Of a stretch of DNA of 64,000 nt, positions 11,475-46,361 are shown piece after piece. The notes below the pieces were generated by a model. That model saw nothing but the letters and a program-made list of their open reading frames with translations, ran no database searches and was not told the DNA's origin. Numbering within the stretch: position 1 is the first letter of the stretch; every line of letters begins with the position of its first letter. The stretch is taken from sequence record OK040170.1, one strand, 5' to 3'. The position numbers and the translations under genes are program-made.

Positions 11475-11930
11475 ATGTCCGATAAAACTATTGCTCGTCG
11501 TGTCTTCATCGCATCTTCCGATCTGGTTAACAAAATCGGCTATACGGCCTTTAACCAGGTCTTGCTGAACGCCAAACATATTCAGTGTGCATTCGGGTTA
11601 CCTTACCCGGACGCAGGCTCTGCTAAGCTGGCAGAACCGTATTCCTATTCCCCGCTGCCAAACAACGGTTACGATACCGTAGAGAACCCGGTAGCTTATC
11701 TGCACGATTTCCGCCGTACTCCTTCTGGTATCTACGCACTGATCTCCCCGATGGAAGGTTGTACTAACAAAACCTTCCTGAAGGCGCTGGCGGGTACGCA
11801 GCAGACGTTCAAGTTCGTTCCGCGCGTTATCTTGAAGAAAGCGAAGCTCAAGTCAGTGAACAACTTCCACCTGCAGGCAGCCAACCGGGACTTCCACGAG
11901 ATCATCACTTTTGACATGATCTGGAAATAA
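11475..11930 (+). CDS. degenerate prohead-protease-fold paralog
   Basis: FGLPYP, IYALISP, FKFVPR and IITFD are spaced like the S78/S80 protease motifs; no catalytic His or Ser. Confidence 0.45.
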   Translation: MSDKTIARRVFIASSDLVNKIGYTAFNQVLLNAKHIQCAFGLPYPDAGSAKLAEPYSYSPLPNNGYDTVENPVAYLHDFRRTPSGIYALISPMEGCTNKTFLKALAGTQQTFKFVPRVILKKAKLKSVNNFHLQAANRDFHEIITFDMIWK

Positions 11931-11995
11931 CTAATCATAGCGGGTAGGGATTTCCCTACCCTTTATACTCCCATTTAATTAAGTAAGGAAATGTC

Positions 11996-12448
11996 ATGAA
12001 AGGTATTAGCGATTATTTGTTATCCATGTTGATTGAAGAAGGTACTGTTACTCGTGCTGAGATTAAGGACTTTATCCGTATCATCAAGGAGCCTTCTTCT
12101 TACGCGACGATTCGCATCGTAGTTCCTAAAGACGCCGGGATTGCTTTCCTGAAAGATCATATTCAGGCCGATGAGATCAAAGCAATGAAGTTCCGTCGGG
12201 TTCGCATTGTTGATGCGCAGTGGCGAGTTGGCGAAACGCTGGTTAACTTGGGCGATAATAAGCCTGGTTTCATCTACCGTGAAGACTCCCACTCTACGTT
12301 CCACCTGGATCAGGTGGTAGGTTATCGCGACCTGGGCCTACGGTTCTCATTTAAGGCAGATACCCTTGCGAGCGGTTTTACTCGTGATGTTTTCTTCCGT
12401 CAGCCTGACTGGGTGGAATTAGAATTCGCTGGGGTATTACTGAAATGA
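11996..12448 (+). CDS. hypothetical protein
   Basis: 150 aa, AAGGA RBS. Confidence 0.75.
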   Translation: MKGISDYLLSMLIEEGTVTRAEIKDFIRIIKEPSSYATIRIVVPKDAGIAFLKDHIQADEIKAMKFRRVRIVDAQWRVGETLVNLGDNKPGFIYREDSHSTFHLDQVVGYRDLGLRFSFKADTLASGFTRDVFFRQPDWVELEFAGVLLK

Positions 12449-12948
12449 TTACAACACTCATCACCTACCGTAAGGGCAGTGGGATGAATCAGATACGTAA
12501 GCAACTGCCAATTAAACACAATGCAGTTGTGTCTGAATCCACTGTCTCGATTGTCTACGCTAAATGGGCGAGTGGTGTAGAGATGACCAACCCTGATGTC
12601 GAAGTCAAGATGGAGGGTAAGTTACTTTCCTTCTCCATGATCCCTCCTGTTGTCGTTGATGACAATGAAGGGATTGAGCTCTTCGTCAACGATCGTTGGT
12701 TAGTTGATCTGAGTAAGATTACTACTGTCGATCAACCGGAGATCATCATCTTCGAGATCGAAACGGGAATTAAGTCGGCCAGTCTCTATCGTCACCACTC
12801 GGGTAAGATCTATCAGGTTATTACTTTAAGTAACATGAAGGTAACCAAACCCGAGTACAAAGAGACTGTGACTTATCGGGATATCGAGAGCGGCACGACC
12901 TACAGTCGTCCCCTTGAAGAATTCACTAAGAGCTTTACAGCTCTCTAA
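12445..12948 (+). CDS. hypothetical protein with C-terminal DUF1653-like domain
   Basis: LYRHHSGKIYQVI, VTYRD and YSRPLEEF motifs. Confidence 0.65.
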   Translation: MITTLITYRKGSGMNQIRKQLPIKHNAVVSESTVSIVYAKWASGVEMTNPDVEVKMEGKLLSFSMIPPVVVDDNEGIELFVNDRWLVDLSKITTVDQPEIIIFEIETGIKSASLYRHHSGKIYQVITLSNMKVTKPEYKETVTYRDIESGTTYSRPLEEFTKSFTAL

Positions 12949-12963
12949 AAAGGTAACGGGGAA

Positions 12964-14205
12964 ATGTTAGAGTCAATAATGACTGTGCTTGAGAAATTCA
13001 ACCACATTGCAAAAGACAACATGTTACTTAGCGTGTTGTTTGGCGGCTCTGGGGTGATGTTGATTACAGCGGTGGTGAAGGGCTTACCATCTAAGTTATT
13101 CAACTTCTTCTTACACCACCTCACTACACGCATCAACATGGAGACAATCTTCAACTATACGCACTTTTCTAACTTTGAAGAGTGGTTCTCCAGTAGTAAG
13201 TGGGTTCGCTACGTACGTTCGGTACAGCCGTCAGTAACGGGTAACGGCAAACAGTCAGCCGGGATGGGGACTCATTGGTTCTTCTATAAATGCAGACCTG
13301 TTAAGTTCACTAAGAAGATGGTGCAGAGCAATGGTCGTAATGATGGGTCAATGGATATGGAATTCCGATTCTTTACCCGTAACCATGCACTCATTGATCA
13401 GTTCTTTGCCGAGATATCTCGGTCGCCAGATCGTAACACGCACACGTTCATCTCAGAACAAGGTGCAGGTGCCTCGGTTAAGATACCCAGTCGAGATCTC
13501 GATACGGTAGTTATCGATGCTGAGACTAAATCGAAGATCATCACTACAATTGATAACTTCAGGAAGAACCGTCAGTGGTACTACGACCGTGGTATTCCTT
13601 ATAAGTTAGTCATCCTTCTTCACGGTTTGCCTGGTACGGGTAAGACGTCATTGATCCGTAGTATCGCAGGTTATCTGAAGATGGATATCATGGTGTTCGA
13701 CCCACGTCGCGACCCTTACAACATTGGCGCCAATCTACGCGGATTGTGGCCAGGGTACATTGGAGTTATCGAGGACATTAACGCCAAACCAATGTCTAAG
13801 GACTTAGCGATTGAGCGGGAACCAGATCCTTTCTCTCCAGTAAACTCCCCTGCATCCAATAAGCCGCCTATCAACGAAGTTGACATGAAGTCCATGTTGA
13901 ACGCGTTGGACGGGCCAGTGCCGTTGGACGATAAGATCATCTTCATTACGTCTAACCACGTAGAGGAGTTGGATCCTACCTTTATTCGGCCAGGTCGTAT
14001 TGATCTTTCCATCGAGATCAAACCACTGACCTACAAGGAAGTTAATGAGTTCAGTATCCTTAATTACGGCCGTGGCATTTCTGATGATGAGTCATATGGT
14101 ACAATCACCGGTGCCGCACTTCAACAGATCATGTTGGATAACATCGGTGATTTCGATGGCTTCTACAAAACACTTAAAACAAAACTTTCCGAAGAGGTAG
14201 CGTAA
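12964..14205 (+). CDS. BCS1-like membrane-anchored AAA+ ATPase
   Basis: N-terminal TM; LLHGLPGTGKTS (Walker A), IEDIN (Walker B), TSNH and LDPTFIRPGRID (SRH); WYYDRGIPYK typical of BCS1-like proteins. Confidence 0.85.
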   Translation: MLESIMTVLEKFNHIAKDNMLLSVLFGGSGVMLITAVVKGLPSKLFNFFLHHLTTRINMETIFNYTHFSNFEEWFSSSKWVRYVRSVQPSVTGNGKQSAGMGTHWFFYKCRPVKFTKKMVQSNGRNDGSMDMEFRFFTRNHALIDQFFAEISRSPDRNTHTFISEQGAGASVKIPSRDLDTVVIDAETKSKIITTIDNFRKNRQWYYDRGIPYKLVILLHGLPGTGKTSLIRSIAGYLKMDIMVFDPRRDPYNIGANLRGLWPGYIGVIEDINAKPMSKDLAIEREPDPFSPVNSPASNKPPINEVDMKSMLNALDGPVPLDDKIIFITSNHVEELDPTFIRPGRIDLSIEIKPLTYKEVNEFSILNYGRGISDDESYGTITGAALQQIMLDNIGDFDGFYKTLKTKLSEEVA

Positions 14206-14639
14206 TGTTTTCACCCATGTTCGAGATGATCGGTAACTTCCTCAACGGTTGTCCTCGGTCTTTCATCACTACCGACGGTTCAGTGACGCTGGAAGAAATG
14301 AAAGGGTGGTTTGGTAACGGTTACAATATCGTTGTTTTTACTCCCCCGGAAGATACTTCCAAATCACGTTCTTACCTCGCTAAGATGTTTGAGCAGGACG
14401 CCGCTGAATTAGAAAGCGAAGAAGGTGAGAATAAGATTTACTTCTACGAGTCAGAGGAAACCGACAGCTATCTGGATATGGCTATTCTGGTTTCCACCGA
14501 CGCGTTGGTTGAGTTCTCTCGTTACATTGATGTTGACGACAAGAATTTCAGCTACATCAACGCTACCATCAAAAAGTGCCGTGGTTACGAATCTTACGGT
14601 AAAGTCACGCTACAACTACCAATGGGGTATCCGCTGTGA
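14205..14639 (+). CDS. hypothetical protein
   Basis: 144 aa, TAATG overlap. Confidence 0.75.
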   Translation: MFSPMFEMIGNFLNGCPRSFITTDGSVTLEEMKGWFGNGYNIVVFTPPEDTSKSRSYLAKMFEQDAAELESEEGENKIYFYESEETDSYLDMAILVSTDALVEFSRYIDVDDKNFSYINATIKKCRGYESYGKVTLQLPMGYPL

Positions 14640-15028
14640 TCGAATACGTTATCTCAGAAACACATATCACTGACAAGACAAAGAAACGCCTGAGTGAACA
14701 ACTCGGCGAAGGTCGGGAGATTACTGCGGTTCTCTCCTTCGATCAGTCTTACGTCATGGAACGTAAAGGCCCTGACTTTTCTGGTCTGCTGGTAATCACC
14801 GGGCCACTGCTGGAATACCATATCTTCCGTAAGGTCGGTATGAAGTTCGTTCATGCAGGAGCCATGAAAACCTCCATTTCAACCGTGTCACTCAGCGATG
14901 ATAACTACAACGCGATGGCCGGTCTGGGAGTGGAGGATAAACTCACCGCTCTTTCCCATAAGGTCAAAGAGCTCCACCCACATATCCTCGCTTACTTTAA
15001 GACGGAGGAAATGAAAGGAGTACTCTGA
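14636..15028 (+). CDS. hypothetical protein
   Basis: 130 aa, GTGA overlap. Confidence 0.7.
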   Translation: MIEYVISETHITDKTKKRLSEQLGEGREITAVLSFDQSYVMERKGPDFSGLLVITGPLLEYHIFRKVGMKFVHAGAMKTSISTVSLSDDNYNAMAGLGVEDKLTALSHKVKELHPHILAYFKTEEMKGVL

Positions 15029-15417
15029 TGAAGAAGTTGATCATCGGCGTTGTTGCGTTGATGCTGGCGGTTTCGTTCAGCATCTCGTTTAGCTACGCAA
15101 AAGATCCGGTCGTGTTCCGTGAGGGCTATATCTTCGAAGCTATATTCACGGGCGACGTAGTCCACGTTAAAACTTTTGACTCCGGGGTTAATTGTACTTA
15201 CGATAGTCGGGTTGATAACGTAGACGAGTTCGAAGGTAAATACTACACGATGCGGTACAGTTGCTGGATCATTCCTGCCAAGTACTTTAACAGCGTTCAT
15301 CTGACTTACTACTACGACTCGGACACCTTTAATCTGATCTATCGGAGAAATTCGAAAGGAGAGATCATTTACGAAGGGATTTGGGCCGCTAAGGATGTGC
15401 TCGATGTACGCCAGTAA
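15028..15417 (+). CDS. secreted protein (signal peptide)
   Basis: MKKLIIGVVALMLAVSFSISFSYA signal peptide, 2 Cys. Confidence 0.75.
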   Translation: MKKLIIGVVALMLAVSFSISFSYAKDPVVFREGYIFEAIFTGDVVHVKTFDSGVNCTYDSRVDNVDEFEGKYYTMRYSCWIIPAKYFNSVHLTYYYDSDTFNLIYRRNSKGEIIYEGIWAAKDVLDVRQ

Positions 15418-15790
15418 AGCTCTCCTTGATCTGGAGGGGATACAGGTGCTACAGGTTGACAAGGAAGTCAATCTCCGTACGCTAGTGAGCTATTACCCCG
15501 TACCTGACGCTCGGGATATTCTCCGCGCAATAGGTCACCCTTGGGTGGAAATAAAGAGCGACTATCGATCTATCTTCTACTGTACGCTACGCAAAGGCAC
15601 AGACCAGAAGCGGTCGTTCATGGATTCGGCTAAGGTGAATAGTTTCTTGAGCAAAGCCAAGGTCGAGGGTAAGGGTGCATTACTCATCGTCCGCGGTTCA
15701 CTGGTCTATTCAGAGGCCAAGGAAGGCGTTAAACGTAAAGTGCGAGTCTACCGTAATCAACTGGGAAATATAACGGAAGTGCTATTGTGA
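15395..15790 (+). CDS. hypothetical protein
   Basis: 131 aa ORF; true start may be ATG 15407. Confidence 0.65.
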   Translation: MCSMYASKALLDLEGIQVLQVDKEVNLRTLVSYYPVPDARDILRAIGHPWVEIKSDYRSIFYCTLRKGTDQKRSFMDSAKVNSFLSKAKVEGKGALLIVRGSLVYSEAKEGVKRKVRVYRNQLGNITEVLL

Positions 15791-16059
15791 TGAAACCTTC
15801 AAGTAAGAGTATTATCATTTCGTGGGTGGTGGCGATCATGTATATTCTTTACATCGTTGCCCTGATGGTATCGCCATTACATTGGCTACCGTGGATCATC
15901 GTTGTTCGAGTGATTCCTTTTATTGGTATTTGGCTCTACGATCGTTACAAGGGAAATAAAGCCCACGGGTTCTTCTCGTACGTGCTTATGCCGCAAGGTA
16001 TACTGTCCATAGCGATCTTAAACTTCAAACAGGATGTCAAGTACGTCTTTGGCAAATAA
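15787..16059 (+). CDS. small 3-TM membrane protein
   Basis: Three hydrophobic segments in 90 aa. Confidence 0.7.
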   Translation: MMKPSSKSIIISWVVAIMYILYIVALMVSPLHWLPWIIVVRVIPFIGIWLYDRYKGNKAHGFFSYVLMPQGILSIAILNFKQDVKYVFGK

Positions 16060-16070
16060 ACACAGAGAAG

Positions 16071-16098
16071 CTCTCCTAGGGATTATTCCCTAGGAGAG
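16071..16098 (+). terminator. 12-bp perfect hairpin, probable terminator
   Basis: ctctcctaggga-ttat-tccctaggagag. Confidence 0.65.
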
Positions 16099-16102
16099 TC
16101 CT

Positions 16103-16141
16103 ATTATATCCATTTCCAATTTTTTTGGTGTCTATATAACC
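16103..16141 (+). repeat. 39-bp direct repeat copy 1, containing promoter variant TATATAAC
   Basis: attatatccatttccaatttttttggtgtctatataacc is identical to 39073-39111. Confidence 0.9.
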
Positions 16142-16199
16142 AGCGCGAAGGTCTATAGTAAAACCTTCTTTTCAAACGTTACAATAAAGGATTATAAAG

Positions 16200-16718
16200 A
16201 TGTTAAGTTCCCTGAAGAAGTGGGCAAAGACCGTCGTCTTTAACTACCGGGCAGATAAAGCCTGGGGTTCGGATGATGAAACTAAAATGGAGTATCTCGC
16301 TGCTATTAGAGCAATGGATTTTTGGAAGTTCAGAGAGATGCGTTTTTTCACAAAGATGGCCACCGAGGACTTTGTTAGGGTACATAATCTTACCGATCCT
16401 TTAAAGATAGCTGATGGATCAATGTTGGTCCATCGCTTACTCTCCAAGTCGACATTCAGTGCGGCGCTTAAGGTGCTCGGTATACTCTCCATATACTACA
16501 CCTTCCCGGTAGAAGGGGCTGTTCTTGGTACGTGTGCATTATTAGCTCACATACGCTTCTTGTACGTAAGAGAGCTGAGATACTTAACTATCAAGATAAT
16601 CCTGGAAACTGAACATAAAGAGTTGGACGGTTGCACCCGTCCAACTCTGGCTACGTGTCTTAAATCATACGTGGTTCGGATTAAACCAATTATAAAAAGG
16701 AGGTTAGGACTTAACTAA
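16200..16718 (+). CDS. hypothetical protein, probable membrane segment
   Basis: 172 aa, AAAGGA RBS, atypical codon usage. Confidence 0.7.
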   Translation: MLSSLKKWAKTVVFNYRADKAWGSDDETKMEYLAAIRAMDFWKFREMRFFTKMATEDFVRVHNLTDPLKIADGSMLVHRLLSKSTFSAALKVLGILSIYYTFPVEGAVLGTCALLAHIRFLYVRELRYLTIKIILETEHKELDGCTRPTLATCLKSYVVRIKPIIKRRLGLN

Positions 16719-16813
16719 CTCCGCTAACCGGGTCAGGTTATGATCCCTGGCTCGGTTACATACTAATTTAAAATACGTAAAAAATTACTTACTTACTTAA
16801 AAAGGAAACTATA

Positions 16814-17134
16814 ATGAAAACAATCATTACCGTACTAACTACTGTTCTTATTGCAACTGTACCTTTCCTTCCTAAAGCGGAAGCAAGCAACGTCTACCAT
16901 ACCGACAAAGGTGTTACATTCACCATTGATGGTAAGTTAGCAGAAATCGAACAAAACGGTAAAGTCACCAAGTGTGCTTTGGTAATCAGTAAAGATGCCA
17001 CCTCTGCCTGGAAATGCAGCAACGGCAAGCAGCTCTGGATTCGTAACAAGCCGGAAAGTGAACTGATCACGTTCGCTATCTTCGATCTGAAAGATGACTA
17101 CCCGGACTTCATTGATTCGGTTCTGAAGAAATAA
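16814..17134 (+). CDS. secreted two-Cys beta-rich protein, paralog 1
   Basis: Signal peptide ending AEA; TKC...WKC motif. Confidence 0.75.
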   Translation: MKTIITVLTTVLIATVPFLPKAEASNVYHTDKGVTFTIDGKLAEIEQNGKVTKCALVISKDATSAWKCSNGKQLWIRNKPESELITFAIFDLKDDYPDFIDSVLKK

Positions 17135-17208
17135 CCAAAATTACGGAGGGGTTATCCCCTCCTCTAATAACTAAATACAAACACTTTAAACTTAAAAAGG
17201 AAATAACA

Positions 17209-17661
17209 ATGAACCCGATCCAACACCTCAAAAAATTCGTTAAGTCAGACGTAGAAGGTCATGCTTTCATCGCGCTATCTGATTCACCTTTCCAGACCGC
17301 AATTGTAAAATGCATTCTTGGGAACGAATTCGGTGAAGCGTTTGAATTGGCCAAGGCTAATAAAAACTCATTCAAATTCTTCGAAATAAAAGAACAGAAA
17401 TATGCCGTAGTGGTGGCCAACGAATACGACTTCACAACCTACATGGACTTACCTGGACTAGTGAACCTGGAAACTGAACTGGGAACTCGCGTAATCGTCT
17501 TTGGAGAGTATGCCCAAGGCGAAGTGCTGGGTAACCTGTTAATCGCTGTTGGGGCTTCCTGGTACGGTTTTACGGCGCCATGGAAACATCACAACGATGC
17601 TCTCCATTATGTCACTTCCAGATATGCCGGTTGTGAAATGGCTCAGTGCAAAATTGCTTAA
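17209..17661 (+). CDS. hypothetical protein
   Basis: 150 aa, AAGGA RBS. Confidence 0.75.
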   Translation: MNPIQHLKKFVKSDVEGHAFIALSDSPFQTAIVKCILGNEFGEAFELAKANKNSFKFFEIKEQKYAVVVANEYDFTTYMDLPGLVNLETELGTRVIVFGEYAQGEVLGNLLIAVGASWYGFTAPWKHHNDALHYVTSRYAGCEMAQCKIA

Positions 17662-17730
17662 CAAACTTTACTAGGGGACATGTTCCCCTAGTTTATTCTC
17701 ACTTGTCCCAATCTTAATTAGGAAAACCAA

Positions 17731-18090
17731 ATGAAACTCATCCACGCTATCTTCGCTATCGCTCTTCTGACTTTTGCTGGTTCTGCTTATGCTAACAACT
17801 ATCGTCTGTACGATGACTACAGCAATGAGATTACTCTTCGCGGTAACCTGCTGAAAATTAAGAACGACGCACACGGCGGTGTTACTCGTTGTACCTTCAA
17901 CGAAAACATCACGGGTAAAGAAAGTGATGGTACAACTTACCGTGGCGCTAACTACCTTTGTGGTGGTAAGATGTGGGCTACCTTCACCACTAACCAAGAA
18001 CGTCACACTGTAGAGGTTAGCGTCTTCCTGTACAAAGATACTCTCTACACCAAAGAACTGCCGCTGGCTGCTCTTGAACTCATCGACTAA
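17731..18090 (+). CDS. secreted two-Cys beta-rich protein, paralog 2
   Basis: Signal peptide ending AYA; TRC...YLC. Confidence 0.8.
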   Translation: MKLIHAIFAIALLTFAGSAYANNYRLYDDYSNEITLRGNLLKIKNDAHGGVTRCTFNENITGKESDGTTYRGANYLCGGKMWATFTTNQERHTVEVSVFLYKDTLYTKELPLAALELID

Positions 18091-18108
18091 TCAATAAGGC
18101 AATCTGAC

Positions 18109-18450
18109 ATGAACCGTTTTATCATCGTATTACTGGCTTTGATTTCTTTTAGCGCTTATGCTGACACCACGACCCTTAGTGAGGGAACTGACTTTAATGC
18201 CGTGATCGGTGATAAAACCTCAGTCGTTAATTACGACGACCAGACCCTGTATTGTGAATTAGAGAAGACCAGCCGGGAACTCGATTCAGAATACGGCAAG
18301 TATCAACTGAAACTCTATAGCTGTGGCGCCAACATCATGTTCGCCCACAAGACCTACGACAGCCAACCTTTCACGCAAGCTATCATCGGTGACAAGGCAA
18401 CCAATGTAGTTTACTACAGCAACTACTTCAATAAGGAAACAACTAAATGA
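18109..18450 (+). CDS. secreted two-Cys beta-rich protein, paralog 3
   Basis: Signal peptide ending AYA; LYC...YSC. Confidence 0.8.
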   Translation: MNRFIIVLLALISFSAYADTTTLSEGTDFNAVIGDKTSVVNYDDQTLYCELEKTSRELDSEYGKYQLKLYSCGANIMFAHKTYDSQPFTQAIIGDKATNVVYYSNYFNKETTK

Positions 18451-18812
18451 AATTCGTTATCGCGTTATTCGTAGCCGTACTGTCCCTGGCGTCTTTCTCT
18501 GCCAATGCAAGTCTGATCCATATGAGCGATGCACCTGAATACGATTTCGTAGTAGGTGACACTACTGCTCGGGTCAAAAACCTGCAAACCAATAAAACCT
18601 CTCGCTGTACGCTGATGTACAATGACAACGGTATCGATAAAGATAACCTCGTCTACGTCGTTAGCTTCTTCCAATGCGATGCAGGATTCGAGCTGATGGC
18701 CAAGATCACAACCGAGAACGGCAACATCATCGTAGCCATGATTCGTAACGGTGCCAATAAAGAGTTCTATCGCAAGTACGCTCCTAAAGGTACTTGGGTT
18801 GTCATGAACTAA
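18447..18812 (+). CDS. secreted two-Cys beta-rich protein, paralog 4
   Basis: Signal peptide ending ANA; SRC...FQC. Confidence 0.8.
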   Translation: MKFVIALFVAVLSLASFSANASLIHMSDAPEYDFVVGDTTARVKNLQTNKTSRCTLMYNDNGIDKDNLVYVVSFFQCDAGFELMAKITTENGNIIVAMIRNGANKEFYRKYAPKGTWVVMN

Positions 18813-21841: not shown

Positions 21842-22281
21842 TGTCTGAACATTCGCGCGTAGTTAACGAAGATGGCACCATTACTATCTTCGTAAGTAAG
21901 TTAGGTGTCCCGTCTAAAATCGACGGACGGATCTATAACGCTTCGGAAGAAGTAATCGATAAGTTCACTAAGGACAACATCGGTAAAGTCGTAGGTACGT
22001 TTGGGCACCCGGACATGACCGGCTTTGTCGACGTCGCCGATTACTTCAAACGACTCGAAGCAAAAGATCTGTTTAACAGCATCGGGATCTTGGTAGACGC
22101 CAACCTTAAGGTAGACGAGCCGTATCTCGTAATCGAACCGAGCAAGCGCCTCAAAAAGATGGTTGACGATAACGTACCATTTGGGCTGGGTATACGCGCT
22201 ATTGTGATCGCGCATTCTCTTGAGTCGAACAATGTTCTGACTATTGAAAAACTCATCGGCTACGATGTCGTCACTAAGTAA
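21841..22281 (+). CDS. prohead-protease-like protein (S80/T4 gp21 fold), probably inactive
   Basis: DGRIY, GTFGHP, FGLGIRA, LIGYDVV; His kept, Ser position is Gly. Confidence 0.65.
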   Translation: MSEHSRVVNEDGTITIFVSKLGVPSKIDGRIYNASEEVIDKFTKDNIGKVVGTFGHPDMTGFVDVADYFKRLEAKDLFNSIGILVDANLKVDEPYLVIEPSKRLKKMVDDNVPFGLGIRAIVIAHSLESNNVLTIEKLIGYDVVTK

Positions 22282-36796: not shown

Positions 36797-36839
36797 GAGT
36801 CACTCTAGGTTAAAGGTCATATCAAACTTAATTTACGCC

Positions 36840-36855
36840 TATATCACAATTATGA
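36840..36855 (+). promoter_or_regulatory. early promoter variant TATATCAC-N5-TGA
   Basis: In the divergent gap, upstream of 36886. Confidence 0.7.
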
Positions 36856-36885: not shown

Positions 36886-37407
36886 ATGAACATTGAAAAC
36901 TTCAAGAAAGACTTTGCTGAAATCGCTGACAAATTCAAAGTGATGTACGGTCACTTCAATCCAGAGAAGACTCGTCCAGATCTGGATATCAACAACGGTG
37001 ACTGTGGCGTATTCGCACTGGCTGTCGGTGCAGTACTCCAGAACAAAGGTTACAGTATCCAGTACGTAGATAACCTCAACCACGGCTTCATTCGTCTTTA
37101 CGACGTCGATGAAGACCTCTGCTTCGACAGCAACAACTACGAAGGTTGTTCCACTGCTGACATGAATGAGCGTTGGAGTTCGGATGAAATCAATCCGCTT
37201 GACTACAACGGCATGTGCGATGCATTTGTCCCTTACGACGTTAAGGGTGCGTACATGATCAAAACAATCCTGGATCATTACTCGGTCCCATTGCCAGAGT
37301 ATATCCAGAACGTACTCAAAGAAGAACTCGAATACGAGATCACCGAGTACGTTGAGAAATACCAAGTGTTCATGGCTCGGTCTATCGAAGAAATGAACGC
37401 AGCGTAA
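36886..37407 (+). CDS. putative papain/transglutaminase-like Cys-His-Asp protein
   Basis: NGDCGVFALAV, NHGFI, CFDS order. Confidence 0.5.
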   Translation: MNIENFKKDFAEIADKFKVMYGHFNPEKTRPDLDINNGDCGVFALAVGAVLQNKGYSIQYVDNLNHGFIRLYDVDEDLCFDSNNYEGCSTADMNERWSSDEINPLDYNGMCDAFVPYDVKGAYMIKTILDHYSVPLPEYIQNVLKEELEYEITEYVEKYQVFMARSIEEMNAA

Positions 37408-37498: not shown

Positions 37499-38371
37499 AT
37501 GAAAACAACTGTAAAAGAGTTAACCAAAAATGTCTATCTGGTCACCTTCGATCTGTTCGAGGCCAGTAGAATGATGAACATGTCCTACTCGGATATGCAA
37601 TCGTTATTCTGCCAACTGCGTAACATGAACGTCGGTAAAGATGACATGTATGGTCGGGTTATTAACAACCACCAACGTGCTCAGTACAACGGTCATGACC
37701 ACTACGACTTCACTTGCTCACCGGACTTCATAATCCGGACAAGTGGTATCCGCATGGATAGCGAAGAGGCTATTGTCTCTATCAAGTTGGAAGTACTTAA
37801 CGAACACGCGTTCCCTGCCTCTGCTGCTGAATTCGCTACCTACTTTAACGAGTACGGTTGGCGCTTCGTACCACGTTGCTTCTACGTGAACTACGAAGTC
37901 GAGGATGCTAAGTTTGAAAATCCAATTCGCTCTTACGTCGGTCAGCCGAAAGAACTGCCCAAAGGCTGGGTTAAGGACGAAAACGTCAACTATAGAACCA
38001 TCGATATTTGGATCGATGACGAAACTGGTACTGAGCTTGGCGAGAATCCAGATGAAGATATCGGCGTGTCGGATTCCGACGAGCGTAACCCGGTAATCAT
38101 CGTCGATCAGACCCATTCTGAAATCATCAAAATGATGCTCTGCTCCGGTTATAATTTCTCTACTGTCATCGACGGTAAAGAAGTTCATTTCGAAATCACC
38201 GGGCCTAAGGACAATTCAAATAACCCTTACGCAGCAAAGTTGGATGAGCACTGTAAAGATCTGAAAGGTTCCTTCAAACAGAAGGAAGGTTATGTCGGGC
38301 CGACCTTTACGCCGGAACAACCAAAACACGTCCCCAATGATCCAACTAGAAGTATGTGGGGGCCAGAATAA
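37499..38371 (+). CDS. hypothetical protein, N-terminal degenerate prohead-protease-like fold
   Basis: MYGRV, WRFVPR and TIDIW resemble 11475-11930. Confidence 0.45.
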   Translation: MKTTVKELTKNVYLVTFDLFEASRMMNMSYSDMQSLFCQLRNMNVGKDDMYGRVINNHQRAQYNGHDHYDFTCSPDFIIRTSGIRMDSEEAIVSIKLEVLNEHAFPASAAEFATYFNEYGWRFVPRCFYVNYEVEDAKFENPIRSYVGQPKELPKGWVKDENVNYRTIDIWIDDETGTELGENPDEDIGVSDSDERNPVIIVDQTHSEIIKMMLCSGYNFSTVIDGKEVHFEITGPKDNSNNPYAAKLDEHCKDLKGSFKQKEGYVGPTFTPEQPKHVPNDPTRSMWGPE

Positions 38372-38381
38372 AAGAGGGTGT

Positions 38382-39031: not shown

Positions 39032-39041
39032 ACATAACACT

Positions 39042-39071: not shown

Positions 39072-39072
39072 G

Positions 39073-39111
39073 ATTATATCCATTTCCAATTTTTTTGGTG
39101 TCTATATAACC
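39073..39111 (+). repeat. 39-bp direct repeat copy 2, containing promoter variant TATATAAC
   Basis: Identical to 16103-16141. Confidence 0.9.
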
Positions 39112-39314
39112 GTGGCGCAAGGGTAGAAGTAATACCTTTGTTAAAATCACAAACCTGCCTCTAAAGGGGAAATACTGTAATCAGATAGAAACCATATACT
39201 CCTATTGAAGTACTTAACCAGTTTTGACTTACGGACTACGTGAGTCGAAGAGCGTGTACGATTGTACACGTTAAACTGAGTTCCGGAACATTCGTCCGGA
39301 ATAGGAGCACTACC

Positions 39315-39929
39315 ATGGAAATCGACTACGATTTCAAAACACCTAGTTTATGGATTGACAAAGGTGTTGTCGAAGACGCTAAGAGATTTAAGTCTCTTAA
39401 TAAATCCGGCAAGAAAAAGTTCATTGAAGAACTAAACGACTACGCCAGTAAAATGGGCGCGACTGACTACTCTAGTGATGGATTGAATCTACTTTGTACT
39501 CTTCTTGATAATATCGAGAAGGGATATGACGTAGAGGCATCTAAGGTGGTTATCTACTGCTTGTTGAAGCGCGTTGGTTTCAATGAGCTCGCCGAGAAGT
39601 TAGAGTCAGCTACTATGGAATCGTTATTAGTTAAAACGATTTTGAAGAAAGCGGCTCGTACGTTGTTATTCTTTATCTGTACAACATACTTAAAGTCCTT
39701 TTCGATATCAGCTTTCATAGCTAAGTTTGCTTATGAATTCATGATACTAGTCGAAAAACGACTGGCGTTGATTAAAGCTGTTTTTAGATACTTTACCGTT
39801 AAAGGACATAAAGAGAAGACTGGGGACAACCAGTCTTCTCTGATTTACGGTCTTGGTACTAAGATCAGTTTGGTTTTCACTTTCTTAAAAAGGAAGTGGA
39901 GGAATATCTATAAGATACTGAGGAGATAA
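39315..39929 (+). CDS. hypothetical helical protein with hydrophobic/basic C-terminus
   Basis: AGGAG RBS before ATG 39315; atypical codon usage. Confidence 0.7.
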   Translation: MEIDYDFKTPSLWIDKGVVEDAKRFKSLNKSGKKKFIEELNDYASKMGATDYSSDGLNLLCTLLDNIEKGYDVEASKVVIYCLLKRVGFNELAEKLESATMESLLVKTILKKAARTLLFFICTTYLKSFSISAFIAKFAYEFMILVEKRLALIKAVFRYFTVKGHKEKTGDNQSSLIYGLGTKISLVFTFLKRKWRNIYKILRR

Positions 39930-40021
39930 ACTACCACTAGGCCCGTGTTACCGCACGGGCCAATACCCTTTTCATAAAAAGAAAAGGTACGTAAAAATTG
40001 ATTTCCATTACTTTTCAAGTC

Positions 40022-40055
40022 TATATAACCTAGGCGAATATCCAGAGTAATCTGG
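40022..40055 (+). promoter_or_regulatory. promoter variant TATATAAC plus AGTAA-containing hairpin
   Basis: Third, diverged copy of the 16.1/39.1 kb element. Confidence 0.65.
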
Positions 40056-40087
40056 TCTTTTATCATACTTTATTTAGGAAAATCACC

Positions 40088-40423
40088 ATGTTCAACAAAC
40101 TGAAATCTCACCCAATCGTAAACCGCATCAAAGCTATCGCTCAGAAAGTTCCAGTGATCAAAGTAGAGATCATGACTATCTCTGAAAACGATTCCGCTCT
40201 GCAGGTTGAAGTGAAACAGACTCTGAACTTCGGTCTGTCTGTAATCATGACCATCGCTCTGCTGGTAACTCTGGCAAACCTGATCGCAGTCACTTGGCCT
40301 ATCCTGGCGTTCTACTCTGTTGTTCGTCTGTGCAACCGTGCTAGCCAAGCGTACAACAACTGGGCAGCTAAGCGTAAGGAAACCGAAACTCAAACCCCTG
40401 AAGCAGAACCAGTAACTGCGTAA
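40088..40423 (+). CDS. 2-TM membrane protein, paralog of 40520
   Basis: MFNKLKS.. basic N-terminus, two TMs, strong codon bias. Confidence 0.8.
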   Translation: MFNKLKSHPIVNRIKAIAQKVPVIKVEIMTISENDSALQVEVKQTLNFGLSVIMTIALLVTLANLIAVTWPILAFYSVVRLCNRASQAYNNWAAKRKETETQTPEAEPVTA

Positions 40424-40519
40424 TAGCTCGATAACCCAAACTGTCGCGACCAGTGAGGGATCATCGAGGATCGTTCTATCACAAACTCCAATCCATCATC
40501 TAATATTGAGGAAAACATT

Positions 40520-40969
40520 ATGTTCACTAAAGCTAAATCTTTCATCCGTAATATCGTCTCTCGTGCTAAAGCTGAGAAAATCGAAGTGCTGACCGTTGAG
40601 CTGGTAGAAGTTCAGGACGTTGCTACTGCAGTTAAAACTGCTAAGAGCCGTCGTAACAAAGCCTTCGCAATCAACATGATTGCAAACTGCATCGTTTCGT
40701 TCTCCTTCGGTTACGCGTTCATGTTCATCCTGTGCCTGTTCCCAGAAATCGTTCTGGCTCTGTGCACCCTGTTCGCTTTCATTAAATGCGTCGATAAGAT
40801 TGCCAACTTCTTTGCGGCGCGCGATGTTAACTCCACTAAAGCTCACCACGCTAACATGGAAGTAATCCTGAGCGTCTTCGGCGGTGAGGCTGTCAGCAAT
40901 GTTCTGGATAAAAAATCTAAGTCGTCCAAGGAGGTGGCGGCTGACGATGGTGTAGTTGCTGCAGCGTAA
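40520..40969 (+). CDS. 2-TM membrane protein, paralog of 40088
   Basis: MFTKAKS.. N-terminus, two TMs. Confidence 0.8.
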   Translation: MFTKAKSFIRNIVSRAKAEKIEVLTVELVEVQDVATAVKTAKSRRNKAFAINMIANCIVSFSFGYAFMFILCLFPEIVLALCTLFAFIKCVDKIANFFAARDVNSTKAHHANMEVILSVFGGEAVSNVLDKKSKSSKEVAADDGVVAAA

Positions 40970-41032
40970 TAAACAGACGGCGGTGGTAATCCCACCGCCA
41001 ATTATTTAAACTTGTTCAAAAGGTATATCCTA

Positions 41033-41206
41033 ATGGAACTGATCTTCTTGATGGTACTTCTCATCGTACTGCTGTCTTTCGTCACCAAATACCGTCCGAG
41101 CTTCATTACCGTGTTAGCGCTCAATCTCGCTATTGATGAGATCGGTATTAGAATCGCGCAGATGGCTTTCCGTGGCCTGGGCTCTGCTTTTAGTCGGGGT
41201 AATTGA
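41033..41206 (+). CDS. small membrane protein
   Basis: AAGGT RBS before ATG 41033; hydrophobic. Confidence 0.6.
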   Translation: MELIFLMVLLIVLLSFVTKYRPSFITVLALNLAIDEIGIRIAQMAFRGLGSAFSRGN

Positions 41207-41207
41207 A

Positions 41208-41405
41208 ATGGTACTAATCACTCTGTTGATGCTCATGTTCGTATTCGCTGAATGTAAGAACCCTATCTTGCGTTTCATTGCGAACATCGTATTCAAAATG
41301 TGTTACTGGATCGGGATGACCTATATTGTCATCGTAGGGACTTTCCTGAAACTGTTAACATTCATCTACGCTTCCATCTTCGGTCGCCGTAATTCTTTAG
41401 CTTAA
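41208..41405 (+). CDS. small membrane protein
   Basis: ATG 41208 right after upstream stop; two TMs. Confidence 0.6.
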   Translation: MVLITLLMLMFVFAECKNPILRFIANIVFKMCYWIGMTYIVIVGTFLKLLTFIYASIFGRRNSLA

Positions 41406-41416
41406 GGAGTTTAATC

Positions 41417-41698
41417 ATGATCAGTAAATTGATGATGTTCCTGTTCGTCATGACGGTATTCGTCTTGAACGCAGCAGCCGGTTTCGTAGTTACCATTGTC
41501 ATGCTGATTTCTTGGATCGCCTCTAAGGTGTACAACGATGCGGCAGTGGGCTACGTGATCAACGTAACTGCTCTGATTGCCATGGGTATCATCTTTGGCA
41601 TCGATGCGGTAGTTCCAGTAATTGCTTTGGCGGTACTGTTCAAGGTATCTGCGGAAGTCATTAAGACAATGGCTACTCCAGTACCAGCAGTGGCCTGA
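41417..41698 (+). CDS. 3-TM membrane protein
   Basis: AAGGAG RBS; hydrophobic. Confidence 0.75.
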   Translation: MISKLMMFLFVMTVFVLNAAAGFVVTIVMLISWIASKVYNDAAVGYVINVTALIAMGIIFGIDAVVPVIALAVLFKVSAEVIKTMATPVPAVA

Positions 41699-41772
41699 TC
41701 GAAAAATACTCTAATAAAGAGTATTATGCTTTTGTTAACAACCCACTCAACTTAGTAAAAGGAAAGTGAAAT

Positions 41773-42747
41773 ATGGCAACTCCAAAAGTAGTAGACTTCT
41801 TTGACACCAACGCAGCGGCGGCTAACCTCAACGTACCGGTTCGCAAGTTCCGTAGCTGGGCCAATGGTCAGCTGAACAAGGCTGAAAAAGAAGCCGGTCT
41901 GAGCCTGGTCGGCTTCCCTAAGCCGGTAGGTAAATCCGGCAAACATCACTGGTCGAATCGTGCCCTGTCTAAATGGACTAAGGTGAACAACGCAGCACTG
42001 GTTACTCTGGGTTACCATGTTAAGGTAGCTGAGAAGAAGACCGTTCAAACTATCGGCACTGCTGAACTGACTCGCGAATACGGTATTTCCGCAACCCGTC
42101 TGAATATGCTGGCGAAAGCAACTGGCGTGACTCGGGAAGAGGCTGGAGCAGGAATGTCCTTGGGCGGATTCCCTAAACCGATAAAAGTCGGGGCTGCAAA
42201 TCTCTGGCCTAAAGTAGCGATCCGTAAGTGGTTCAAAGCTAACAAGGATGCCCTGGAGCATCTCGGTTATATCCCTTCATTTAACAAAAAGGCTGCTAAA
42301 CCAGCTAACGCCGCTAAGGCAATCAAACCTAAGGCGCTGAAACAACCGGTCGTTAAGGCGAGCAAGAAAGTTGAAACGGCGCCGGATATTCTGGGCGAAG
42401 AAAACACAAAGAGAAAGCCGAGCTACTCTGCGACGATCTCCGCTCCGGATAATTTGAAATTCCTTATTGCCACTAAGCCCGGTAGTTCGGTTAGAGCGTC
42501 CTCTATCTCCGTCGCCAGCACGGATGTAGAAACCGCCCTCATCGCACTGGCTGAACTGTTAAAACCCGTCGTCGTCGTTAGCACCAACGCTACGGCTCGT
42601 CTTGTCATGAGCAAGTACAATGCTCAACTCAAAGAACTGATGGGTGACGCGGGACAGCTCACTAAACTGAGTAACGACTTTGAAAAGCGTCTGATGGACG
42701 TTCAACGTCTGTCGTCCGGTATCGAGATCGCTGTAACTAAACTGTAA
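41773..42747 (+). CDS. DNA-binding protein with two AlpA/excisionase-like HTH repeats
   Basis: Two copies of G-FPKP-x-K-xG-xxx-W-xxx-A-xx-KW; Lys/Ala linker; helical C-terminus. Confidence 0.7.
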   Translation: MATPKVVDFFDTNAAAANLNVPVRKFRSWANGQLNKAEKEAGLSLVGFPKPVGKSGKHHWSNRALSKWTKVNNAALVTLGYHVKVAEKKTVQTIGTAELTREYGISATRLNMLAKATGVTREEAGAGMSLGGFPKPIKVGAANLWPKVAIRKWFKANKDALEHLGYIPSFNKKAAKPANAAKAIKPKALKQPVVKASKKVETAPDILGEENTKRKPSYSATISAPDNLKFLIATKPGSSVRASSISVASTDVETALIALAELLKPVVVVSTNATARLVMSKYNAQLKELMGDAGQLTKLSNDFEKRLMDVQRLSSGIEIAVTKL

Positions 42748-42817
42748 TATCCCTACCCGAGTAGAGAGGAATAACCCTCTCTACTTATACTCTTTTTTAA
42801 CATCAGGAATAAATATC

Positions 42818-43261
42818 ATGAAGAAACTCACCGCTGTTATCGCACTGACCGCCGCTCTGTTCTCCGCCAATACCCTGGCCGGTACATGGGGCTCGTCCTG
42901 GGCACAAGGAACCACTGAGGTTATTAACAATAACGCAAACGGTTCCTCTGTAAACTTCTCCTGTTCGGACGATGGCGATAAGCGCATTCTGTTCGTAGAT
43001 ACTGCAGATGGCCGTCGCTACGACAGCGAAACTGACAGTTACACTATCGTTGCTAAAATCGATGGTAACGAAGTTCAGTTCGTTTCTACCCTTAGCCGCG
43101 TTGGTGAGGCGAACTGGGCGTACTTCTGGAAGAAGGCGGAAACTGTGAAATCCAAAACCATCACAGTGATCGTCCCTAACCACAAACCGTTCACTGTATC
43201 CACCGCAGGCCTGAAAGCTGTCGCAAAAGACAAATCGCTGAAAGACTGCTTCTTTAAATAA
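42818..43261 (+). CDS. secreted protein (signal peptide)
   Basis: MKKLTAVIALTAALFSANTLA signal peptide; 2 Cys. Confidence 0.8.
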   Translation: MKKLTAVIALTAALFSANTLAGTWGSSWAQGTTEVINNNANGSSVNFSCSDDGDKRILFVDTADGRRYDSETDSYTIVAKIDGNEVQFVSTLSRVGEANWAYFWKKAETVKSKTITVIVPNHKPFTVSTAGLKAVAKDKSLKDCFFK

Positions 43262-43272
43262 TCGAGGTATCG

Positions 43273-43572
43273 ATGAAGTTCGAAATTGATAAAGGCCTTC
43301 TGCAATTCCTGTACGCTGACGACACAGGTACTTACGCCGTAGTCGGTGCGCCAGGGAAACGTGACTTCTCACTCAACCTTCGTTCCGGTGTCTACAAACA
43401 GGTTTCATTCGCTGATTTCGGCTCAAAGCCTAAAGACGGCGATAAGATCTACTTCGACGTCAACGGGACTTTCGTCACTCTCGTTAAAAAGGCGAAGAGT
43501 ACTGAAAAAGTTAACGAAGGGAAAGGTGGCATGGGCAAAGGCTCAAAAACTTTCCGTGAACACTGCTTCTAA
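43273..43572 (+). CDS. hypothetical protein
   Basis: 99 aa, GAGG RBS. Confidence 0.75.
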   Translation: MKFEIDKGLLQFLYADDTGTYAVVGAPGKRDFSLNLRSGVYKQVSFADFGSKPKDGDKIYFDVNGTFVTLVKKAKSTEKVNEGKGGMGKGSKTFREHCF

Positions 43573-43640
43573 CGGGGCATAGGAGAGGGCATTTAGCCCT
43601 CTCTTTATTTTTTGTTTCATTGACAAATAAGGAGATCGCT

Positions 43641-44168
43641 TTGTCCATTATTCTTTATCACAAGGGTGTTATTGCTGCTGACTCAAGAGGGATTATTGAT
43701 CAGGGGAAATACACAGAGCGTTTGTGCGGTATGCTCAAGTTATTCTCATTCGGCGGGAAAGTCGTTATGGGGATGGTTGGCGATAACACGACTATTGACT
43801 GGGCGTGTAAAGAGTTCTTTTATTTCAGTGAGAAAGTCATTGAAATGGAGGAGGGGGATTTAGATACGCTTCCATTATCTAAAGACATCCTGGAACGATA
43901 CGGTATGGAAGACTCTACTCGTACGCTTTGCTTCATGACACGTAGACACCATTACTACGTCGGGGTGACTGGTATCATACGCTGGGAGAAAGGTATCCCA
44001 TGGGCAGCAGGTAACGGGATGCGTACTGCTCTGCAATCGTTATCTAACGGATTCGATGTAGAGTCATCGGTGCGGAACGCCATATTGATGAATCCTGATT
44101 GCGGTGGCACGGTAGTCATTCACCATGCTAAAGATCTGGAGCTTATCAAAAGGAAGAAATCTAAATGA
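43641..44168 (+). CDS. HslV/proteasome-beta-like Ntn hydrolase
   Basis: AAGGAG RBS then TTG gives (M)SIILY..VIAADSR; GMVGD, AAGNG and NPDCGG motifs. Confidence 0.65.
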   Translation: MSIILYHKGVIAADSRGIIDQGKYTERLCGMLKLFSFGGKVVMGMVGDNTTIDWACKEFFYFSEKVIEMEEGDLDTLPLSKDILERYGMEDSTRTLCFMTRRHHYYVGVTGIIRWEKGIPWAAGNGMRTALQSLSNGFDVESSVRNAILMNPDCGGTVVIHHAKDLELIKRKKSK

Positions 44169-44644
44169 AAAACTTCGCAGCTTTCTACGATGATAAAGTC
44201 ATCTTTAGTACGAAGATCCAAAAGAGTTCAGGGCTACCGACTACTCTTAGCTGGGATTCTCTATTCACGCCACACGGATTCATTGTCCCCTACTCTCTAA
44301 GCTGTTTCGCTATCCTTGATATCATCGAAGACAACAAGGTTCCCGTTGATCGTTCCGGTGAAATGCTAGGGATGCTCATTACTCCCGAGGGTAGGGTTTA
44401 CGAGTATGCGGTAGGGAGTAACAACAAAGTTATCTGTAACCGTCTGGTAATCGGTAAAGGTTTCCGTCATTGCCGTTCTGCCGATTACCTTACTGAAGAT
44501 ACAATGAACTCTGCGATCCACTTAACAACCAGTCCAGAAGCAGCGTTGGATTGGTTCCACAAAACTTTGCCGACATTCACTAACAGTTACTTCGTCATGG
44601 GTGTCGACGACATCGTAGCCAAGATTAAGGAAAAGGGTCTATGA
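44165..44644 (+). CDS. possible inactive paralog of the upstream Ntn-fold protein
   Basis: Similar length and secondary-structure pattern; no N-terminal Ser/Thr. Confidence 0.4.
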   Translation: MKNFAAFYDDKVIFSTKIQKSSGLPTTLSWDSLFTPHGFIVPYSLSCFAILDIIEDNKVPVDRSGEMLGMLITPEGRVYEYAVGSNNKVICNRLVIGKGFRHCRSADYLTEDTMNSAIHLTTSPEAALDWFHKTLPTFTNSYFVMGVDDIVAKIKEKGL

Positions 44645-45264
44645 ACGAAATAGAAAAAGATGAGGTTGTCACCAGCAGGCCTCCCGCTACTGATCGCGCT
44701 ACGCTTTACGATGTACTGAACGTAGACATCAACAAAGTGGTACTCCGTGTGCGTGGTCGCGTTACGCCGGTTGATGCAGCTAAACGGCTGTTGGCTTTGG
44801 TGGAAACTGCTAGAAGTAAATACTCGGGTGAACATTCGATCGATCTTCATGACGTTTCTGATCATCGTTACATGATCATCGAACGTAATAACGACATCAT
44901 TGAGTTCGGTGGCGTCGATACTACCAGTGACCGTGTCGCCTCAGTTAATCTGTCTTTAGAGGTTGCTATACTGGATCGCGGTATCGAATTCCTCACCAAG
45001 TTCATTGAGATAAAGTCTGCGGAAGTTGATCAGATTTTACTCGGCGGCGGCCGTGCTATTAGTTGCCCGGCTGTAATTGAGAAATACTTCGAAGCTGAAG
45101 AGATCGAACTCTTACGCGATGAGTCTGAGTTACCTCAACTAAAGATGTTTAAACCTAAGGGGATGAACATCCCAGGGAACAACCGATCCATCCACAACAA
45201 AGTTAAACCAGGGAAATTCTTCAACAAAAACAGGAACTTCCGTTCTTCTGGTCGGGGCAGATAA
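44641..45264 (+). CDS. hypothetical protein with basic RG-ending tail
   Basis: 207 aa, ATGA overlap. Confidence 0.75.
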   Translation: MNEIEKDEVVTSRPPATDRATLYDVLNVDINKVVLRVRGRVTPVDAAKRLLALVETARSKYSGEHSIDLHDVSDHRYMIIERNNDIIEFGGVDTTSDRVASVNLSLEVAILDRGIEFLTKFIEIKSAEVDQILLGGGRAISCPAVIEKYFEAEEIELLRDESELPQLKMFKPKGMNIPGNNRSIHNKVKPGKFFNKNRNFRSSGRGR

Positions 45265-45434
45265 TTTCCCCTTGATTCTATGATTCCGGGAAGTAAGCAG
45301 TACAAATAACCCCTCCCTTTTGGGAGGGATTCTTAAGAGGGTCGTCCCTCTTTTTTTGTTCCCTTATTTTTTCAAATACTCTTTAAATAGTTTAGTAACA
45401 ACTAGACTATCACCCCTCCTTTAAGGAATAAACC

Positions 45435-45593
45435 ATGCAACAGTCAGCACCTGCTAATGTAGCAGAAGTAAAACCAGAGAACGCTTATTTCGAATCTGGT
45501 TCAAACGAGCAACCTGTGTCAGTCTCTCAATGCGACTTCCATTACGGTAGCCTGGACGGCCTGGCAACCATTATGGCAAACCCTCAGCACTAA
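45435..45593 (+). CDS. 52-aa hypothetical peptide (not in ORF track)
   Basis: AAGGA RBS; MQQSAPANVAEVKPENAYFESG...MANPQH. Confidence 0.6.
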   Translation: MQQSAPANVAEVKPENAYFESGSNEQPVSVSQCDFHYGSLDGLATIMANPQH

Positions 45594-45604
45594 GGAAAAT
45601 AAAC

Positions 45605-45874
45605 GTGACTAAAGATCTTTCTTCCTATTTCAAACCAGCCGCCGATTCTACTGCTCTGCCAGGTCAAACTCGTGGCGAAACTAAATTAACAACGACCTTC
45701 GACGAGCTCCCTGTAACTGGCGCCGGCGCAAAGGTTATCGATCAAAGTGGTGATTCCCTGGATTCTCTGTTCGACGGCATCGATTTCGACGCGGTAGCTG
45801 CTCGTAACGAAGAGCGGGCTGAAAGCGGTGAAGAGTTCGTCGATGACGGCGACTGCGAAGGCTGCAAGATCTGA
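45605..45874 (+). CDS. stand-alone acidic protein ending in an NrdA-like redox C-terminal tail
   Basis: AAGGA RBS, GTG start; ends EEFVDDGDCEGCKI-stop. Confidence 0.7.
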   Translation: MTKDLSSYFKPAADSTALPGQTRGETKLTTTFDELPVTGAGAKVIDQSGDSLDSLFDGIDFDAVAARNEERAESGEEFVDDGDCEGCKI

Positions 45875-45889
45875 AGATAATTTCAGGTC

Positions 45890-45905
45890 TATATTACTTT
45901 AATGA
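45890..45905 (+). promoter_or_regulatory. phiKZ-type early promoter TATATTAC-N5-TGA
   Basis: 20-mer tctatattactttaatgata is identical to 63949-63968. Confidence 0.85.
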
Positions 45906-45986
45906 TAATCGAATCAGTCGATTAAATCGAGAGTAGGATTTTCCTACTCTCTACTATTTTACAATTTAGTTTAGAGAGATTTACAC

Positions 45987-46361
45987 ATGAGCGTTACATC
46001 TTTGACCAAAGTCCGTTTACCGATTCCATCTTTCTGGCGTCAAAGCGATTTGGAAAAGATCGCAAAAGCTTTGAACAACCGTAGCGTGGTACTGGGTGAA
46101 ACTAACCCTACCTTCCCAGTTAAAGAACCGGGTCGCTTCTACGAAATCAAAAAGCCAACGCATCGCCTGGAAAACTTCCGTGCTACTGACGGACAGTTAA
46201 CCGCAAGTGTTAAGATCATCGACCCTGAAGTGCTGGGTGACATTATCGATGGTCGTTCTTACAATTTCAGTATCCGTCGTAACAATGACGTTTTCGCTAA
46301 AGACGGTAGTACTTGCTCAAGTGCTCCTGGTCTGATCGCGATCGATATCCGTTTTAACTAG
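45987..46361 (+). CDS. degenerate prohead-protease-fold paralog
   Basis: VLGETNP, NFSIRR, LIAID; Ser kept, His lost. Confidence 0.5.
   Translation: MSVTSLTKVRLPIPSFWRQSDLEKIAKALNNRSVVLGETNPTFPVKEPGRFYEIKKPTHRLENFRATDGQLTASVKIIDPEVLGDIIDGRSYNFSIRRNNDVFAKDGSTCSSAPGLIAIDIRFN

Follow-up and report, generated by a model that had tools for sequence, protein, structure and literature searches.

Diverged paralogs of the prohead protease are already known from giant phages. The peptidase S80 prohead protease of phage SPN3US, gp245, has the catalytic triad H77, S153, and D178 and a C-terminal tail that is inferred to target the prohead and is removed by autocleavage, and the same phage encodes gp117, a diverged paralog of this protease with 201phi2-1 gp206 and PhiPA3 gp143 among its counterparts (Ali et al. 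2017, PMC5694885). That study, which called a prohead-protease paralog unprecedented, reported that the 3' part of the protease gene is missing, that gp117 retains the Ser and the Asp, and that some Erwinia phages carry two such paralogs; gp117 was interpreted as what is left of a duplication long ago (PMC5694885). We found no paper in the literature that gives a function to any such giant-phage paralog. Here we report on four small genes, P1 to P4 (Table 1), that lie within a 64,000-nucleotide stretch of sequence record OK040170.1, referred to below as the window. A preliminary description of this DNA had proposed that the four encode dispersed, catalytically degenerate prohead-protease paralogs, and every motif that it quoted is present in the four open reading frames (ORFs). 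Three of them can be identified as pseudo-proteases (P1, P2, and, as a probable member, P4), and we judge it highly probable that at least three are dead copies derived from an S80 protease. Because diverged protease paralogs of giant phages were published in 2017 (PMC5694885), the kind itself is not new; the families, their number, their catalytic degeneracy, and their early-type context are.

The window is 100% identical to positions 208721-272720 of Serratia phage BUCT660, a jumbo myophage of 273 kb that belongs to the genus Moabitevirus and has Moabite, 2050HW, and Totoro among its close relatives, and all four genes are annotated as coding sequences (CDS) in BUCT660. The genuine protease was located in the near-identical genome of phage 2050HW, where a single strong match to Peptidase_S80 (PF20034, E 2e-68, 227 bits) lies at about 101.6 kb; a search of the same genome for Peptidase S77 gave no match. 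This protein of 249 residues contains the motifs GELGHP, AFSIRS, and ITFDVV and, since the S80 triad is known from SPN3US gp245 (Ali et al. 2017, PMC5694885), these can be taken to carry the catalytic His, Ser, and Asp, respectively. It is related to the head-maturation proteases of many jumbo phages, the phiKZ-like and SPN3US-like ones included, and a related-locus search made with it returned three loci only. The counterparts of P1, P2, P3, and P4 in 2050HW lie at 160.0, 170.4, 184.9, and 193.4 kb, 58-92 kb from the genuine protease; the four genes are thus located outside the head-morphogenesis module, as had been proposed.

Homology was assessed with a reference alignment of 13 genuine S80 proteases and a small family alignment for each candidate, word-based searches having found just two to four close relatives apiece. 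In profile-profile alignment (hhalign) with the 13 S80 proteases, P2 scored 89.8% (P 1.8e-6) over 134 columns that cover nearly the whole protein, and an S80 hidden Markov model (HMM) run over the 651 ORFs of the window placed P2 first (E 0.0076) and P1 third. In the reverse search of the genome with a P2 HMM, the real protease was the second-best match, at a level that is not significant (E 0.95). For P1, the hhalign match to S80 was marginal when the family held close homologs only (P 0.046). A HMMER search with the P1 profile over 1.8 billion proteins yielded one useful distant member (P0013), together with repeat-protein false positives, and the match after its addition stood at P 8e-4. 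The P1 profile further matched homologs, at E 1e-12 to 1e-13, in two Klebsiella jumbo phages, and P1 aligned with these homologs matched S80 at 83.6% (P 8.1e-6) over 102 columns, the first at the His motif and the last at the Asp strand. Compared by its ESM Atlas features, P1 scored 0.95 to the S77 and S80 clusters (174 and 170 shared features, respectively). By these profile comparisons, both P1 and P2 are true S80 homologs. When, as a calibration, the S80 profile was aligned by hhalign to all 72 annotated window proteins as single sequences, P2 and P1 took the first two ranks, in that order, with P4 in sixth place (out of register) and P3 in 24th; the hhalign P-values behave sensibly, because the lowest P among the controls was 0.04.

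The four proteins are linked to each other only through the S80 protease. Pairwise BLASTP among P1-P4 found nothing in register, the sole match with E <0.1 being 20 residues aligned out of register between P2 and P4 (E 0.026). In hhalign comparisons across families against all 72 window proteins, the other mini-proteins came near the top without reaching significance, and the P2-P4 match was out of register. A Pfam scan placed P2 (E 0.01, 15.4 bits) below the gathering score of Peptidase_S80 (23.4 bits) and gave no match for P1, P3, or P4 at E<=1. A PHROGs search returned no matches, nothing relevant came from the PDB when it was searched with profiles of the P1, P2, and P4 families, and an HMM iterated from S80 over all 2050HW ORFs recruited only P2, never reaching P3 or P4 and adding no further paralogs. 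A pattern of motifs plus spacing selects only P1, P4, and the real protease among 809 ORFs; it was designed after these had been seen, and is not counted as evidence.

The P2 gene is labeled 'capsid maturation protease' in the BUCT660, Moabite, and Yaphecito records, that of Moabite citing an 81% HHpred match to T4 gp21 (5JBL); the real one is the other gene, at 101.6 kb in 2050HW. P2-like matches were also seen in two other phages. In Erwinia phage pEa_SNUABM_37 (locus L031, 401-796), a weak match (tblastn E 0.3) falls within the C-terminal part of a hypothetical protein of 766 residues, far from that phage's real protease, and may represent a fused mini-protease domain. In Pseudomonas phage HHBS36_1 (locus L033), a 'hypothetical protein' of 136 residues (320-730) is encoded directly upstream of a short 'head maturation protease' CDS (780-1124), and it is the former that the P2 query matches; a frameshift, an intron, or mistaken annotation may have split the genuine protease gene into two CDS in this record.

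Profile-profile homology over the S80 catalytic domain was found for P2 and P1, and not for P4 (P 0.14, not significant, though in the predicted register) or P3 (P 0.04-0.5); P4 aligned with the enlarged P1 family at P 0.0037 over 79 columns, which is likewise not significant. The ESM Atlas model of P4 (predicted local distance difference test, pLDDT, 0.70) resembles the clusters of S77 (template modeling, TM, score 0.72), Mu-like_Pro (0.70), DUF2213 (0.70), and S78 (0.64). Wherever its structural neighbors in the Atlas are assigned to a Pfam family, that family is one of prohead proteases, and a search by Atlas features returns DUF2213, YonD_N, S77, and S80. On the strength of this model, P4 is probably a member of the family.

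The case of P3 is less settled. Beyond its N-terminal domain, P3 has an acidic linker and then an extra C-terminal domain. This second small domain (residues ~200-290, window 38100-38371), whose C-terminal end, SMWGPE, is conserved in Totoro, gave no match, and the AlphaFold2 (AF2) model is of low confidence there. Profile comparison found no significant match of P3 to S80 or to any mini-protein family, the alignment to the P1 family reaching P 0.04-0.07 over 43-57 collinear columns. The AF2 model of P3, made from a shallow alignment, is poor (pLDDT 43); Foldseek with this model found no protease in the PDB and just a weak one in BFVD, and its match to T4 gp21 (5JBL; Z 4.4, rank 11) lies inside the noise band. 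There is a real possibility that P3 stands outside the family, with FVPR and TID motifs that match by chance and a domain of another fold. Against this, several weak local matches keep the order of S80 (the N-terminal hairpin with S80, the Ser strand with P1, and the Asp strand with gp210 of 201phi2-1), the gp21 match covers 105 of 165 residues, and the homolog in FBKp24 has the more canonical pair YNFVPR ... IIGFDLL. On balance, we lean slightly toward membership for P3. The proposal of four prohead-protease paralogs is therefore borne out by profile for P1 and P2 and, as a probable member, by the Atlas model for P4, and falls short for P3.

In family alignments against SPN3US gp245 (H77/S153/D178), none of P1-P4 has a complete His-Ser-Asp triad. 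The Asp is kept in all four, and the strand that bears it is invariant in the P1, P2, and P4 families. The canonical His is absent from P3, from the P1 of BUCT660, in which the segment equivalent to GELGHP reads FGLPYP, and from P4, whose family reads GE[TL]NP where the His motif is expected; in P2 the residue is His or Arg, and one Klebsiella-phage homolog of P1 retains His (ELGH). The Ser position is occupied by Val, Ala, or Tyr in the P1 family, by Val or Phe in the P3 family, and by Gly in every ortholog of P2. In P4 it is Ser (FSIR) within Moabitevirus, and Thr or Arg in the homologs from Klebsiella phages. The preliminary description of P2 as an S80-like protein with Gly for Ser is upheld, with the refinement that the His is Arg in two orthologs. 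P4 does keep the Ser and lack the His in Moabitevirus, as described, but the Ser is not conserved beyond it; and both residues are indeed missing from P1 and P3, the latter being a protein whose membership is itself unproven.

P1, P2, and P4 each end four residues past the Asp, whereas genuine S80 proteases run on for about 70-100 residues. Since the three proteins stop within 3-5 residues of the Asp strand, they lack the C-terminal, putatively prohead-targeting, autocleaved tail of S80. The ratio of nonsynonymous to synonymous substitution rates (dN/dS) relative to phage Totoro is 0.09 for P1, 0.16 for P2, and 0.15 for P4, and these three are therefore maintained by purifying selection; the same comparison was saturated for P3. 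Compared with the S80 protease (phiKZ gp175, SPN3US gp245; PF20034), the mini-proteins share a homologous core that includes the Ser-bearing strand and the Asp strand, but are about 100 residues shorter and are without autocleavage sites, a complete triad, or a location in the head module. Their likeness to T4 gp21 (S77, 5JBL) and to the herpesvirus-assemblin-like fold (S78, DUF2213, Mu-like_Pro) is at the level of the fold, the catalytic residues not being kept.

Proteins of the gp117/gp206 type resemble P1, P2, and P4 in that they are small (about 125-150 residues), S80-derived, tail-less, and encoded apart from the real protease. In 201phi2-1, gp206 (145 residues) and gp210 (125 residues) are both annotated 'head maturation protease' in RefSeq and match our local S80 HMM at 8e-8 and 2e-10, respectively (values from a two-sequence target file); like P1, P2, and P4, both end soon after the Asp strand. 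Their records are without the note 'identified as virion protein by mass spectrometry' that many neighboring genes have; for phiKp24, the paper on its structure gives no proteomics. The two genes are 1.4 kb apart, beside polymerase genes (10214-10651 and 12091-12468 of locus L042); gp210 keeps the His (YRHP) and is without the Ser segment, and gp206 has Glu at the His position. The differences are that (i) no significant sequence link was found to gp206 or gp210, the best hhalign P being 0.0025 (gp210-P1) and 0.027 (gp210-P2), with gp117 compared by description only, and (ii) BUCT660 has three or four such genes in one genome and most of their products have lost the Ser, whereas gp117 retains Ser and Asp. 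For the BUCT660 genes, an early-type promoter context was also seen. Judged from their sequences, the BUCT660 mini-proteins form families of their own, which are more diverged and belong to another lineage of jumbo phages.

P1-P4 sit in arrays of small genes. The motif CTATAT[T/A/C]AC was found 11 times in the intergenic regions of the window, against 1.4 expected, with 10 of the 11 copies on the + strand; it often follows a T-rich stretch and lies near stem-loops. The motif is the same as the phiKZ promoter TATATTAC and similar to the consensus of 201phi2-1 (PMC7058600, Table 2), an analogy that suggests phiKZ-type (virion RNA polymerase) promoters in Moabitevirus. Three of the four genes (P1, P3, and P4) belong to units with this putative early-promoter motif, and P4 is the first gene behind one copy, in agreement with the preliminary description insofar as the motif acts as it does in phiKZ. 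P2 has stem-loops on both sides and therefore forms a single-gene unit.

Table 1. Positions in the window of the four genes, their active-site equivalents, and the surrounding transcription signals.
Feature	Position	Strand	Remark
P1	11475..11930	+	151 residues; S80-derived mini-protein
P1 Val115	11817-11819	+	At catalytic Ser position
P1 Asp147	11913-11915	+	Kept; protein ends 4 residues past Asp
P2	21841..22281	+	146 residues; S80-derived mini-protein
P2 His56	22006-22008	+	Present here; Arg in two orthologs
P2 Gly117	22189-22191	+	At catalytic Ser position
P2 Asp142	22264-22266	+	Kept; protein ends 4 residues past Asp
P3	37499..38371	+	290 residues; N-terminal ~175 residues are a candidate protease-like domain
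P3 WRFVPR, Val124	37868-37870	+	FVPR motif common to P1
P3 RTIDIW, Asp169	38003-38005	+	Asp-strand candidate
P4	45987..46361	+	124 residues; probable protease-fold mini-protein
P4 GETNP, Asn40	46104-46106	+	Occupies place of protease GELGHP
P4 Ser95	46269-46271	+	Present here; not conserved in family
P4 Asp120	46344-46346	+	Invariant, as is His59; protein ends 4 residues past Asp
CTATAT[T/A/C]AC copies	1900, 10016, 16132, 19769, 28151, 36839, 39102, 40021, 45889, 63950	+	
CTATAT[T/A/C]AC copy	36488	-	
Putative promoter motif CTATATTAC	10016..10024	+	Heads four-gene unit 10065-11930, P1 last
Stem-loop	11931-11995 (gap)		After P1
Terminator-like stem-loop	21747..21770	+	Upstream of P2
Second terminator-like stem-loop	22292-22307		Downstream of P2
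Putative promoter motif CTATATCAC	36839..36847	+	Heads unit 36886-37407 plus P3; P3 is second gene
Putative promoter motif CTATATTAC	45889..45897	+	Followed by stem-loop 45929-45951; P4 first gene downstream

From these results, we take P1, P2, P4, and possibly the N-terminal domain of P3 to be duplicates, of ancient origin and extreme divergence, of the S80 (phiKZ gp175-type) protease that the phage itself encodes, cut down to the core domain, with the strand of the triad Asp kept and the nucleophile Ser, the His, or both lost. We propose that such mini-proteins would be neither proteases nor parts of head assembly, and would act in the cytoplasm as noncatalytic mimics of the protease. Taken as a whole, this identity and cytoplasmic role form the best explanation that we can offer, and we regard it as moderately probable. 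How the mimics might work is a more tentative matter. They may still have the groove that binds substrate and, without cutting, sit on protease-recognition loops, which would shield proteins from the late protease; these could include host immune baits, such as the activation loops of the cGAS/DncV-like nucleotidyltransferases (CD-NTases) of CBASS, the antiphage signaling systems based on cyclic oligonucleotides. Several very different copies would fit several different targets.

The beta-rich core could instead be a generic binding scaffold reused for host takeover or other early roles, with descent from a protease being only its history. P1-P4 are as dissimilar from one another as unrelated proteins, and the mini-proteins are encoded among many unrelated small early genes; the published interpretation of gp117 as a relic of past duplication (Ali et al. 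2017, PMC5694885) is in keeping with this account. Within the active-site region, however, the Asp strand and the x-F-x-x-R strand are the best-conserved parts of every family, which would be odd if that region were irrelevant, and we hold such reuse to be possible without favoring it.

It seems unlikely that the tail-less dead copies are regulators that co-oligomerize with the S80 protease in the cytoplasm and hold it inactive or soluble until it enters the prohead, limiting off-target cleavage. A pentameric state has been described for T4 gp21, and a dimeric one for herpesvirus proteases. The mini-proteins have their fold and core strands in common with the real enzyme, and mini-proteins without the prohead-targeting tail, a role inferred for that of SPN3US gp245 (PMC5694885), could not follow the protease into the head. 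The early-type promoter context is nevertheless at odds with a protease that is presumably expressed late, and the extent of divergence makes conserved oligomer interfaces doubtful.

That one or more of the proteins is still active with noncanonical residues, for example P4 through Ser95/His59/Asp120 or the Klebsiella-phage homolog of P1 with ELGH, is very improbable, for although P4 of Moabitevirus keeps FSIR with an invariant His59 and Asp120, and SPN3US gp117 retains Ser and Asp (PMC5694885), the P4 Ser gives way to Thr or Arg in the Klebsiella-phage homologs, Val, Ala, Tyr, or Gly stands at the Ser position in P1, P2, and P3, and every family has either lost the canonical His or varies at that residue.

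Several points also weigh against our proposal of cytoplasmic protease mimics. The place of P4 in the family depends on a single source, the Atlas with its model and features, and P3 is only a candidate member. The AF2 models of P1 (pLDDT 34, from a shallow alignment) and P3 are too poor for judging whether the groove is conserved. P2 has no promoter motif of its own, and the early timing of the other genes is deduced from the motif alone, by analogy with phiKZ; a search for RNA runs containing this phage returned none. Nothing ties the Serratia hosts of BUCT660 to a protease-sensing CBASS, and any function of the mini-proteins would be conjecture.

According to a 2026 preprint, prohead proteases activate CBASS by cutting the CD-NTase activation loop and are a major CBASS trigger (PMC12991175). 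The preliminary description had raised the possibility that the pseudo-proteases are decoys or inhibitors of host sensors; this role is speculation, but it is now better motivated, and testable, because the preprint links cleavage by prohead proteases to CBASS activation. That early-expressed dead mimics blind defenses that sense prohead-protease activity, whether by occupying bait loops or by sequestering free protease, is at present a distinctly improbable, if specific, form of our proposal.

These results call for a correction of the annotation, as Moabite gp281 and the BUCT660 CDS labeled 'capsid maturation protease' are not the maturation protease. Jumbo phages have paralogs of this kind in greater number and over a wider range than was known in 2017, when one or two per genome had been reported. 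Dead, tail-less copies of a protease, expressed before the real one as the promoter motif would suggest, are candidates either for countermeasures or for the self-regulation of a dangerous enzyme. If they do blind host defenses, they would be the first anti-defense for which the immune trigger itself served as the model, in the form of a pseudo-enzyme copy.

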